This document shows, piece by piece, positions 5,957-9,469 of a stretch of DNA of 32,158 nucleotides (position 1 is its first letter; each line of letters starts with the position of its first letter). The notes under the pieces were generated by a model. The model was not told the DNA's origin. It worked only from the letters and a program-made list of their open reading frames with translations, and did no database searches. The translations under genes were made by a program, and so were the position numbers. Origin of the DNA: Pelomyxa schiedti (taxonomy: Eukaryota; Protista; Evosea); NCBI GenBank assembly GCA_020536535.1, contig JAHLWZ010000994.1, positions 1 through 32,158 on the forward strand, given 5' to 3'.

Positions 5957-6760
5957 TTATGATAGAATACCATGCAATTCATGGTTTTTGAGAATCACAG
6001 CAATACTCAGTGTCACACCCCCAGTGGAGACTGTGTGAAGTTGTGACCGGTCAAGAGGTGATGTTACAACATTGTCATTGGTGAGTTGAACAGCTCCTCC
6101 AACAAAATATGCTATTTGAAATAAACAAAGGGAAAAGAGTGGTGGAGTTACATGTTAGCTCTTCAAACCAGGTCCCTTTTGGTCTCCAAGTAGGGCATGT
6201 GATTGTATGGTACCCAGGGGAACACGGCAGATGCACAAACCCATAGCCACCTAGAGAAATACATATAAATTAGCAGAGTTCCCCACAAATTACTGGCATA
6301 CACAGTTGATTTGTTGCAAATTCATCATGGTGGAACACAGTCAGTTTAATCTTTGGCCAGTGTGCTACAGACTGAGTCCTAAAGTGTAGGTCCAATGGGT
6401 GATCCCATGTGCTCATATCACTATCCTTGTTAGTGGATGTGGTCAAAATAGAGTGTGTCAAATTCCTTACTTATTTACTTTTCATTCCCATAATTTAGTA
6501 CCAACATCATGTCAATCGATTTGACCAACACAACGACAGCAGCCTCCCCACAATTCATTTCTCCTTGTTTTGGTTTTGGGTCGCACACTTACCACAGGAA
6601 CATCGACGTGGGTTTGGCCAACAGGGGTGCCCTCAATGAGAACCCATCCGGCCCCAGGGTCGTGCTCGACTTCGAATTTACAAAACAGCCCACTGCCGCC
6701 GCCCTCCACGCCTCCGAAGCCACGGCCCCCGACTATCTGCCCTATGAAGTGCACGTCCAT
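5957..6760 (-). CDS. B9D2: B9 domain-containing protein 2 (MKS ciliary transition-zone complex)
   Basis: Spliced product: [15 protein letters not shown]...LFCKF...GQTHVDVP|...[20 protein letters not shown]...|[31 protein letters not shown]|..FVGGAVQL...[29 protein letters not shown]. This is collinear with B9D2. Confidence 0.92.
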
Positions 6761-6952
6761 GCTCCCCCCACCCCTCGTGTTATTCTCTCTATGTAATTAT
6801 GGGACAAATACACGCCCAGCACCAACGATACGTCTCGTGTTGGTTTGTTGCTTGTCTGATTACGTGAAAAACAAAAACCTCTTTTTTTTTTCCAAGCGAT
6901 AATATACGATCTGGTAGTGAGAGCCATCGGCGGGGTGTTTGCGCGCAGGAAA

Positions 6953-7714
6953 ATGAGCCGAAGCACAAGCACAACTACAAGCACGCACCGACACCACCAC
7001 CACGACACCACGTCACCCTCAACAACTGCCTCCACTTCCACACCCACATCCACTTCTACCTCAGCGTCCTCACCCTCACCCTCGGCATCGGCGACAACAA
7101 CAACAACTACTAGTAGTACTAGCACTAGTGCAACATCAAGTAGTAGTTCAGCAGGGGGGAAGTACAGGGGGCAGGGAGGCGGGGGCGTGGGCGTGTCGTC
7201 AGGGGGCGGGAGAAGGCACCCCACCACGAGGAAGCTGGTGCGCGACAAGGTGTTCATGGTCACGTCGCCCGCGCTCAGGAGGCTGGCCAGGAAGGCCGGG
7301 ATAACGAGGATGGCCGACGACGCCATTTGGGTAAGTTAGTTCTCATGCTCACGCAAATGCCCGATTGTTATAATTGCGTTAATCTGTCATTGCAAATTGA
7401 CACCCACCAACCCCTCTGTCTATATATATACATGGCATTTTGGCCTCATGCATGACAGAATAAACAATTAAACGTATAAATGGTGGTTGAATAGAAGACT
7501 GACTAAAGTGAAAATTAGATGGCTGGGTAAAAGTGTTCACTCCTCTTATTGATTTCGATAGGTAACAAGAGGTGCCCTGTTTACGTTTGTCACGCATGTC
7601 ACTCGCGATGCTCTGGCCTACTGTGACTTCGCTCAACGCAAGACTGTTATGGTCAGTGATGTCCTCTACGCCCTCAAACGGCAAGGCCAGACTGTATATG
7701 GCTTTGGCCTCTAA
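6953..7714 (+). CDS. Divergent histone H4 variant with long Ser/Thr/His-rich N-terminal extension (2 exons, ~176 aa)
   Basis: Exon 1 is 6953-7330, the GTAAGT..AG intron is 7331-7561, and exon 2 is 7562-7714. The core [34 protein letters not shown]|[50 protein letters not shown] aligns without gaps to the H4 histone fold. Confidence 0.9.
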
Positions 7715-7997
7715 GCAGGGACACCTATACCCCATAGCCATATAAAACCCGCTGCTGATGTCATGGCCAACTTTGGCACCCCTCTTGCTTTCTTGAAGGC
7801 ACTGATTGTAATATGATGCATGGAATCGGTTCTGGCAGGCATCCTCCTGCCCATGTTTGTGTCAATCAAAGAACTCCAAAGATACCCACCCATATCTTTT
7901 GTATAGAGACAAGAATTCAAAAAAACAACAAAAAAAGAACTCTTTTTGGATTTAAACAAAGGGTGTATGTTGGTGTTGTGCAATTCAAATACAAGTG

Positions 7998-9469
7998 TCA
8001 TGATTGGTCCCCTGTTTCTGTGGGGGGAGCTTGATTGGGGTTAAAGTGCTCACTTTCACGGAATGCTGAGAAAAGTGAGAACAGGATGTGCAGTGATTCA
8101 ACAAGGTTGTCATATACAGGTATATCCAAAATAGCGCACAAGATTTTCACATAGTCCTTGAGTTCAATGTCAAGGGAGCCATTGGGTATTGTAATCTGTT
8201 TGATTAGTTTAGACATAACTACATCCTTTTTTTACAGAATTATTGAGAAGAGGAATTTTAACCTTCTCAAGGAGTTCCTCTACTTCAGGAGGCCATTCTT
8301 GCATCAAAGACTCAATGGAAGGCATTGGATGAGAGAGATTGGCTTGTGGTGAGGGATGTTCTGCATGTAGTTTGGCTATTTTTTCGATCCATCCAGTGAT
8401 TTCCTTTGGCTTTTTCTCGGCATTTTCTATTCCCCGGATTTCCATGGTGGGCAAGCCTGTTTTCTTTGAGGCCATTCGCAAGGCCATTTCCAGAACTTGT
8501 TTAACGGGGTTGGTAACTAGTACCAGTAAAGAAGGTGAGAAAACCTGTTGTATCAGACTGTTTTCCGGGTTCATCTAGGGTAGTTATCCCTAAAACATCA
8601 CTTGCATCACCTAATATTTCTTCGTTGGAGAAGTCCTTTTCTTGCCCAGGTGGGGGGGGAGGTAATGGAACCTTTAAGACTTTCAGGAGTTTAAAAAGAA
8701 AAATAATAAGGTACCTTGATGAAGGCATCTACTTCCCCTACTGCTGGAATGTAATCGGGGATAAATGGTTTAAATGTTGTCTCCAGTTGGAATTTTGGCA
8801 GATTGTAGCTGTCAATGAACTGAAAAATACTTGCAACCTCAGCTGAAACATTGAGTTTTTGGTAGGCTTCTTTGTTGTACACCCTATTTTGCAATAAGGC
8901 GCAAACTAAGTCACCCAGTGTAAATGCCTTGGTTTTGGTGCTGGCTGTTGCTCTTCTTCACTCTCATGTTCAGGATATCCATCATAGCCCCTGCAAGGGG
9001 GGGAAAAGAATCACTGTCAGACCTGTTTAAACATATAAGAAAAACACACTCATCACTATCAGCAGCTCCTCCAAATCCCACCTACAATTGGGGAATTATG
9101 AATTGTTTCACACCAAGCAAAAAAAAAAAAAAAAACACAACAAAGCAAGTGACAGGACTATTTTAAGTACTTCAAATTAAAAAACGACACATAGCCACAA
9201 GTAAAGGGAGGGTGATTGTTTTGCCCAACCGGTTTTGTCAGAGGGTCCTCATCACTCCCTCCCTCGGGTGCATTTCGTGGAGTCGTCTCTCGTGCAGTTG
9301 CTCCCCCTCCCCCTGCATTCTCTTCCTCGTAATTTTCGTCTCCTTCACTGCATGCAAATGGTAGAAGAAGCAAAAAAGAAAAAAGGGAACAGACGGGTCA
9401 GCCACCAGTGTGGAAGAAAATGTGTCAAAAAGAAAAGAAAACAAACCCAGGGAGTGGGTCATTTTCCAT
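7998..9469 (-). CDS. IFT46: Intraflagellar transport protein 46 (IFT-B)
   Basis: Acidic N-terminus (MENDPLPG|EGDENYEEE), then YNKEAYQKLNVSAEVASIFQFIDSY...KPFIPDYIPAVGEVDAFIKVP, LGITTLDEP..QSD, MPSIESLMQEWPPEVEELL and LCAILDIPVYDNLVESLHILFSLFSAF. The start codon is inferred. Confidence 0.92.

Follow-up and report, generated by a model that had tools for sequence, protein, structure and literature searches.

H4 is the slowest-evolving of the core histones, and it has been stated that "H4 variants are few" (PMC3380720). Among divergent H4 variants, a function was only recently assigned to one, namely, the ATRX-deposited fungal H4v. This fungal variant, H4E/H4v, is represented by hheA in Aspergillus nidulans and by NCU04338 in Neurospora crassa and was demonstrated to bind H3 (PMC10878826). 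In Neurospora, H4v shares 62% identity with H4 and occurs in MNase-resistant nucleosomes, and the ATRX orthologue SAD-6 is responsible for its deposition (bioRxiv 10.64898/2026.08.11.744009). The H4 of Entamoeba histolytica shows 71% identity to the consensus and contains a 16-residue N-terminal insertion that is rich in Lys and Arg (PMC4393863).

Here, a variant H4 gene was studied that is located in a 32,158-nucleotide stretch of DNA (the window) of Pelomyxa schiedti (Archamoebae), where it occupies positions 6953-7714 of the plus strand and consists of two exons (6953-7330 and 7562-7714). P. schiedti is a giant multinucleate anaerobic amoeba, and histones were not mentioned in the Pelomyxa genome paper. 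The variant resembles the canonical H4 of P. schiedti in length, gap-free alignment, tail spacing and C-terminal signature. It differs from the canonical H4 in that lysines were lost, the basic patch is interrupted, the intron is inserted at another site, 67 extra codons are present and the neighbouring genes are ciliary. It is likely that this gene encodes a lineage-specific functional H4 paralogue of P. schiedti, and as far as the literature searched shows, it would be the first such variant noted in Amoebozoa.

A fourth H4-like gene in the P. schiedti genome

The gene had been noticed in a preliminary description made from the sequence alone. When the exons, the intron and the reading frame were read again, the coordinates and the translation given there were found to be exact. 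Exon 1 comprises 126 codons, which encode a 67-residue tract, a Gly/Arg-rich tail and the start of the histone fold, and the aligned start of the canonical H4 Met falls directly 3' of the extension, at codon 68. The positions of all features are collected in Table 1.

Table 1. Features of the variant H4 locus and related sites (positions without a prefix are those of the window)
Feature	Position	Strand	Remarks
B9-domain gene	5962-6760	-	ciliary
Upstream region	6761..6952		192 bp; divergent intergenic/promoter region, common to the minus-strand B9-domain gene
TATA-like ATAATATA	6899-6906		47 nt 5' of the ATG at 6953; by-eye reading
Ser/Thr/His-rich N-terminal extension	6953..7153	+	codons 1-67; low complexity; putatively translated
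H4 N-tail homologue	7154..7255	+	codons 68-101; gap-free against canonical residues 1-34; left out of the public model
Helix alpha1, loop 1, start of alpha2	7256..7330	+	codons 102-126; annotated Met102 at 7256; aligns with PDB H4 residues 30 onward
Intron	7331..7561	+	231 nt; GTAAGT..AG; phase 0; joint seen in RNA contigs
Exon 2: rest of alpha2, loop 2, alpha3, H4-type C-terminus	7562..7714	+	50 codons and TAA; RNA contigs of runs X1 and X3
3' UTR	7715..7909	+	RNA contigs ending at 7904-7909
IFT46 gene	8001-8811	-	ciliary
Canonical H4 locus	L002:1219-1635
Canonical H4 locus	L003:1192-1620
Canonical H4 locus	L004	-
Candidate hairpin	L003:1708-1720	+
Candidate hairpin	L004:1366-1379	-
Candidate hairpin	L012:786-799	-
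Candidate hairpin	L013:782-794	-
Related hairpin	L015:1517-1531	+

Sequence searches were performed with the two exons separately and with the public protein model P0001, and statistics were added up over codon blocks aligned exon by exon. P0001 is annotated as "core histone H2A/H2B/H3/H4 [Pelomyxa schiedti]", is 75 residues long and starts at Met102 (nt 7256). The best 60 solved-structure matches of this model were all histone H4 (E 8e-21 to 1e-19) and spanned H4 residues 30-102. In Pfam, P0001 matched CBFD_NFYB_HMF (6e-8) and CENP-T_C (2e-6), and the TAF, CENP-S, TFIID-31kDa and Bromo_TP folds were matched only below the cut-offs. Placement among the histone-fold families was made via relative E-values; the available relatives are near-identical canonical H4s, and the variant would be an uninformative long branch in a tree.

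Three canonical H4 genes were found elsewhere in the 52-Mb genome, two of them positioned head-to-head on contig C873 and one on contig C970. All three encode one identical protein of 109 residues. The two C873 copies differ at 2 of the 249 nucleotides compared; between C873 and C970, 52 of these 249 nucleotides (approximately 21%) are different, with the protein unchanged. The tail of this canonical H4 is lengthened and contains extra lysines (..GKGLPMGGKGGKGAKRHRK..). The introns of the canonical genes are inside the codon equivalent to Thr71, i.e., at a site other than that of the variant, whose intron is located between the equivalents of H4 E52 and E53. Because three canonical genes with differently placed introns coexist with the gene at 6953-7714, it may be concluded that the latter does not encode the standard H4 of the organism but is an additional, fourth H4-like gene. 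Its interpretation as an H4-derived paralogue was thereby upheld.

The variant is sited apart from the canonical histone genes and has its own gene structure. Both flanking genes are located on the opposite strand, and the minus-strand ORF that begins with the ATG at 6760 gave a B9-C2 Pfam match. Two irregularities were observed in these neighbours. A cDNA contig of the B9-domain gene terminates at 6731, downstream of the apparent ATG at 6760, with the Smart-seq template-switch oligo, and this end may represent a truncated cDNA or an alternative start. In the IFT46 region, an otherwise matching DNA-run contig contains one extra G after position 8651, which may be an indel of the assembly.

Residues 68-176 of the variant are collinear with the 109-residue canonical H4, with zero gaps and a shared C-terminal end point. 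Identity to the canonical protein is 50/108 overall (46%) and 43/83 (52%) from R19 to the end, and in the R19-to-end comparison, approximately 55% of the nucleotides are identical. Arginines were kept at 11 of 14 positions, whereas lysines were kept at 3 of 12 (9 of 12 lost; Fisher p = 0.016). The retained Arg positions include R35, R36, R39, R45, R55, R67, R78 and R92, of which R35, R36, R39, R45 and R78 are DNA contacts in canonical H4.

The lysine depletion of the tail, as described previously, was confirmed. K70 and the K20-equivalent K94 are the only tail lysines of the variant, and where canonical H4 has its five acetylatable tail lysines, the variant has Q, G, G, R and P. The equivalents of R3, of R19-K20 and of R23-D24 are kept in the tail. 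The contiguous K16-K20 patch is absent, and the basic patch of the variant reads RRH-PTT-RK. It had been suggested that the K16 position is occupied by Arg; this assignment requires a three-residue gap, and the gap-free alignment puts Pro90 at K16 and RRH three residues more N-terminal. Furthermore, K31, K44, K59 and K77 are replaced by S, T, F and Q, respectively; in helix alpha2, E52, E53, K59, E63 and N64 are replaced by W, V, F, T and H; and the equivalent of His75 is Phe. The core changes that had been pointed out earlier are indeed present, since the stretch IYEETRGVLK(V/I)FL(E/D)NV is altered and YTEHAKR is converted to YCDFAQR. The net charge of the H4-homologous part is +19 in the canonical protein and +13 in the variant. 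The RKT motif of loop 2 and the C-terminal strand (..TVYGFG; of the ..KRQG.T.YGFG type) are retained; in canonical nucleosomes, this strand of H4 docks H2A. The distance from R72 (R3-equivalent) to K94 (K20-equivalent) is 22 residues, as in Pelomyxa H4, which is five more than in universal H4. This shared lengthened spacing indicates that the variant descends from an H4 whose tail was already long.

Word-index protein searches with the exon 1 region 66-126 and with P0001 returned the variant itself and a few ordinary H4s and were too insensitive to argue absence. Therefore, 1.84 billion cluster representatives were also searched exhaustively with HMMER, which gave 3640 matches. The most identical match beyond the variant itself was P0022 (58%); this protein and all others inspected were ordinary H4 cores, many of them with mis-modelled ends. 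Some matches looked like N-extended H4s; on inspection, they were found to be mis-modelled or duplicated ordinary H4s. A relative closer than ordinary H4 was not found among these 1.84 billion representatives, which were clustered at 50% identity; the number of sequenced Archamoebae is small. A scan of viral contigs revealed no relative, and a search for contigs encoding P0001 found nothing on record.

Start of translation and the Ser/Thr-rich extension

The only in-frame ATGs are those at 6953 and 7256, and the frame is closed upstream by the TGA at 6857. The claim that no other in-frame Met precedes the fold is correct for the region upstream of M102; it overlooks M102 itself, which directly precedes helix alpha1. 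A consensus 5' splice site able to supply another first exon was not seen. Among the patchy, low-depth RNA contigs, none covers 6732-7284, and a gap there proves nothing.

The sequence between the two ATGs was compared with the canonical tail. The 34 codons upstream of Met102 share only 40% of their nucleotides with the codons of the canonical tail. Their BLOSUM62 score is 53, compared with -9.6 +/- 12.6 under neutral drift, and this score was reached in 0 of 5000 simulations. For the last nine codons before Met102, the score is 27, compared with a neutral value of -2.2 +/- 7.4 (0/5000), and the BLASTP alignment to canonical H4 begins nine residues before Met102. These 34 codons behave as coding sequence; therefore, the public start at Met102 is probably too short, and the 75-residue public model is probably a truncated annotation that lacks the tail as well as the extension. 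Translation most likely starts at the ATG at 6953, and it is fairly probable that a 176-residue protein is made from this position.

The tract of 67 residues consists mainly of 25 Ser, 23 Thr, 6 Ala, 5 His and 4 Pro, with Ser and Thr together accounting for 72%. Serine is encoded by TCN codons 14 times and by AGY codons 11 times, and threonine is encoded by all four of its codons. Tandem repeats in the tract are weak, and it is not a plain microsatellite. The amino-acid entropy is lowest in the coding frame (2.23 bits vs 3.12 and 3.87 bits), and frame 2 is also nearly open. No Pfam domain was detected in the extension, and when the genome was searched with the extension peptide, the extension itself was the only match.

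Tracts of the (ACN)6 type number about 6000 in the genome, and Ser/Thr-rich stretches were also observed in an H2B-like ORF on contig C1109 and in an H3-like ORF on contig C802. Because such tracts are abundant elsewhere, low-complexity Ser/Thr insertion should be regarded as a habit of this genome and not as a gene-specific mark. The preliminary description had already cautioned that Thr/Ser tracts recur in several proteins of the window, and thousands of Thr-type (ACN)n tracts were indeed counted genome-wide. The tract is probably one of the many low-complexity expansions of the genome. It is presumably disordered, and its regulation by phosphorylation or O-GlcNAc, which had been proposed, is pure conjecture.

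Several other histone loci of the genome were recorded. At C1109:8686-9207 (L019), an H2B-like fold is preceded by a long N-terminal part that contains Ser/Thr tracts, and at C802:78460-79060 (L016), tandem pieces of an H3-like fold are accompanied by a Thr-rich insertion. A divergent H3-like fold, possibly centromeric, was found at C817:103234-103548 (L021). H2B-like and H2A-like folds are encoded on one strand approximately 0.6 kb apart at C5:4549-5645 (L014) and in an inverted copy at C5:14837-15933. Two H3 loci are present on C137 (L010 and L011), and the H3 coding region of both is interrupted by runs of N.

Transcription, selection and signs of replication independence

The RNA data originated from single-cell libraries that all belong to one study and one sample, and the contigs were patchy and of low depth. 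The libraries had been prepared by Smart-seq2 with oligo-dT priming (PMC8887013). A contig of run X3 joins 7285-7329 to 7561-7692. A contig of run X1 covers 7561-7909, and its first nine letters are identical to 7321-7329. A contig of run X2 covers 7718-7904, which belongs to the 3' UTR. Thus, contigs from two libraries show the splice joint and a contig from a third library shows the 3' UTR, and it may be concluded that the variant gene is transcribed and correctly spliced. At position 7631, one contig of run X3 (depth 2.8) has A in place of G, which would convert Ala to Thr at the equivalent of H4 A76. Allelic variation, editing or an error could account for this A.

When the variant was compared with the canonical genes, dN was 0.43-0.48 and dS was saturated, so the dN/dS ratio was unmeasurable. 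Because dS was saturated, neutral drift was simulated instead. Canonical codons of the fold were allowed to drift neutrally to the observed nucleotide identity of 55% in 3000 runs. The simulated folds retained 22.8 +/- 3.1 identical residues of 83, with a maximum of 36, and 8% of the runs were stop-free. The observed fold retains 43 of 83 and contains no stop, which is approximately 6.6 SD over the neutral expectation. Together with the result for the tail (0/5000), these findings indicate constraint at the protein level and not neutral evolution; the fold has been under purifying selection.

The intron and the lack of a visible 3' stem-loop had previously been taken as signs of a replication-independent gene. 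The argument from the intron failed, since the canonical H4 genes of this organism also contain introns and the genome mean is 7.43 introns per gene (PMC8887013). With respect to the stem-loop, a scan of the variant locus and the three canonical H4 loci with Rfam detected no family at E <= 1 and no histone stem-loop at any of them. A hairpin of the form GTGTT-N(2-4)-AACAC was found approximately 90-150 nt after the stop codons of two canonical H4 genes, one H3 gene and one H2B gene. The whole 52-Mb genome contains 290 such sites, and 4 were seen in 3.15 kb of histone 3' flanks, where approximately 0.017 were expected (Poisson 4e-9). This element is a candidate for a lineage-specific histone mRNA 3' hairpin, which the Rfam histone stem-loop model fails to recognise. 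The variant has no such hairpin after its stop codon, but neither do one canonical H4 gene and two H3 genes. This line of evidence speaks only weakly in favour of replication independence. In Physarum, most histone mRNAs, including those of variants, have both a stem-loop and a poly(A) signal (PMC8600027).

Proposed role, alternative explanations and known H4 variants

The pairing of the variant with H3 was studied by complex prediction. P0001 and the organism's own H3 (P0168, residues 38-135) were predicted to form a histone-type handshake with a score of 0.75, compared with 0.01 for the best control. The mark of 0.75 is reached by 51 of 78 solved complexes and by 2 of 108 mismatched pairs. 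The runs agreed in at least 91% of contacts, and the partner pLDDT was at least 79. Because H3-H4 structures are abundant and the model may have remembered them, this predicted pairing was considered a likeness to H4 and not proof of binding.

The variant may act as follows. It would pair with H3 and enter a subset of nucleosomes, in which its tail would be unable to bear an acetylation code of the K5/K8/K12/K16 type. The Pro-Thr-Thr break in the basic patch would weaken the contacts of the H4 tail with the acidic patch and with remodellers. If translation starts at the ATG at 6953, a 67-residue Ser/Thr/His-rich tract would be placed ahead of the tail. Considering the altered surface of alpha2 (E52W, E53V, K59F and E63T) and the His75Phe replacement, normal octamer assembly is not guaranteed. 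It is conceivable, though somewhat doubtful when taken as a whole, that a full 176-residue, lysine-poor and acetylation-blind H4 with a disordered Ser/Thr/His arm marks specialised nucleosomes, that it is independent of the fungal H4v, and that it is part of an unusually wide histone repertoire that includes Ser/Thr-extended H2B-like and H3-like genes. If so, P. schiedti would provide a natural experiment on the need for the H4 tail code and the basic patch, in which the DNA-binding arginines were kept and nearly all modifiable lysines were shed.

Other explanations of the data were considered. Translation could start at Met102 and yield a 75-residue tail-less histone-fold protein, with the upstream sequence serving as a 5' UTR or promoter. 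The public model has exactly this start, the RNA contigs begin at 7285 with none further upstream, and the 75-residue product would hold a complete alpha1-alpha2-alpha3 fold. However, a 5'-incomplete transcript behind the annotation would result in the same start, and the missing 5' coverage has no weight in a contig set that is patchy and of low depth. Moreover, the 34 codons before Met102 are in frame, collinear with H4 1-34 and H4-like beyond what neutral drift produces, and the BLASTP alignment to canonical H4 begins upstream of this Met. Such a short isoform is considered unlikely. The heavy changes in the alpha2 surface, the Phe in place of His75 and the loss of the basic patch and of most lysines would also suit an H4-derived histone-fold subunit that was neo-functionalised outside nucleosomes, for example, as a member of a TAF/SAGA-like or CENP-T/W/S/X-like complex or as a chaperone decoy. 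The sub-threshold Pfam matches to the TAF, CENP-S and Bromo_TP folds and the many odd histone-fold genes in the genome are consistent with this possibility. Nevertheless, the Arg positions that in canonical H4 contact DNA, the loop-2 RKT motif and the H2A-docking C-terminal strand were kept, as was the length of H4 without any indel; H4 is the best match by far (E 1e-20 vs 1e-3 to 1e-8 for other folds); and pairing with H3 is predicted. A role outside nucleosomes seems even less probable than the short isoform.

An expressed but decaying duplicate, i.e., a transcribed pseudogene with a Ser/Thr tract that is a meaningless microsatellite-like open sequence, could account for an orphan with no ortholog found, for the low RNA depth and for an extension of low complexity whose frame 2 is also nearly open in a genome with abundant (ACN)n tracts. 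It does not agree with the 176-codon frame and the splice sites, which are intact, with the correct splicing, with the selective retention of arginines and the hydrophobic core, or with the amino-acid conservation far over the neutral level, at which few simulated folds stayed free of stops. It is very improbable that the gene is decaying. Amoebae host giant viruses that encode histones, and the protein is unusually divergent; both points could suggest that the gene was acquired from such a virus or some other organism, or that the contig is a contaminant. On the other hand, the variant shares the lengthened tail spacing and the 109-residue length with the host H4, and its spliceosomal intron is removed in host single-cell RNA. 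It is sited on a 32-kb contig between B9 and IFT46, which are intron-rich ciliary genes. In addition, no relative was found on viral contigs, and the nearest proteins are ordinary eukaryotic H4s. A foreign origin is therefore the most improbable of these explanations and can hardly be expected.

The interpretation of the gene as a functional H4 paralogue of the P. schiedti lineage was then compared with known H4 variants. Compared with the Pelomyxa variant, trypanosomatid H4.V and human H4G differ much less from their own canonical H4, and they are not known to have a long low-complexity N-terminal extension. They are similar to the variant in that they are single-copy and located outside the canonical arrays (PMC3380720, PMC13052989, PMC6895281). 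The H4 variants of dinoflagellates, Amoebophrya and Perkinsus are likewise deeply divergent and often elongated, and they coexist with more conventional H4s (PMC4751559). However, the lineage that carries them is not related to Pelomyxa and relies less on histones for packaging, and in the representative search no sequence tie beyond H4 was found. The H4 of Entamoeba histolytica is also archamoebal and has an unusually long, divergent N-terminus, but its insertion is part of the standard H4, whereas Pelomyxa keeps a normal K-rich H4 beside the K-poor variant.

The fungal H4E/H4v is the closest analogue of the Pelomyxa variant and not its ortholog. Orthology was rejected, since the best matches of the Pelomyxa protein are ordinary H4s with at most 58% identity and the protein ends at the canonical C-terminus. 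In both cases, an extra divergent H4 with its own intron/exon pattern is present beside identical canonical copies, the N-terminus is extended (in Pelomyxa, probably), and the distribution of lysines and arginines is altered. The fungal protein binds H3, and for the Pelomyxa protein such pairing is predicted. The fungal variant has an N-terminal extension of 25 residues and a C-terminal part of 35 residues and keeps the acetylated equivalents of K8 and K16. In contrast, the Pelomyxa variant is 46-52% identical to its canonical H4, has a probable Ser/Thr tract of 67 residues and no C-terminal addition, and has lost all five tail lysines.
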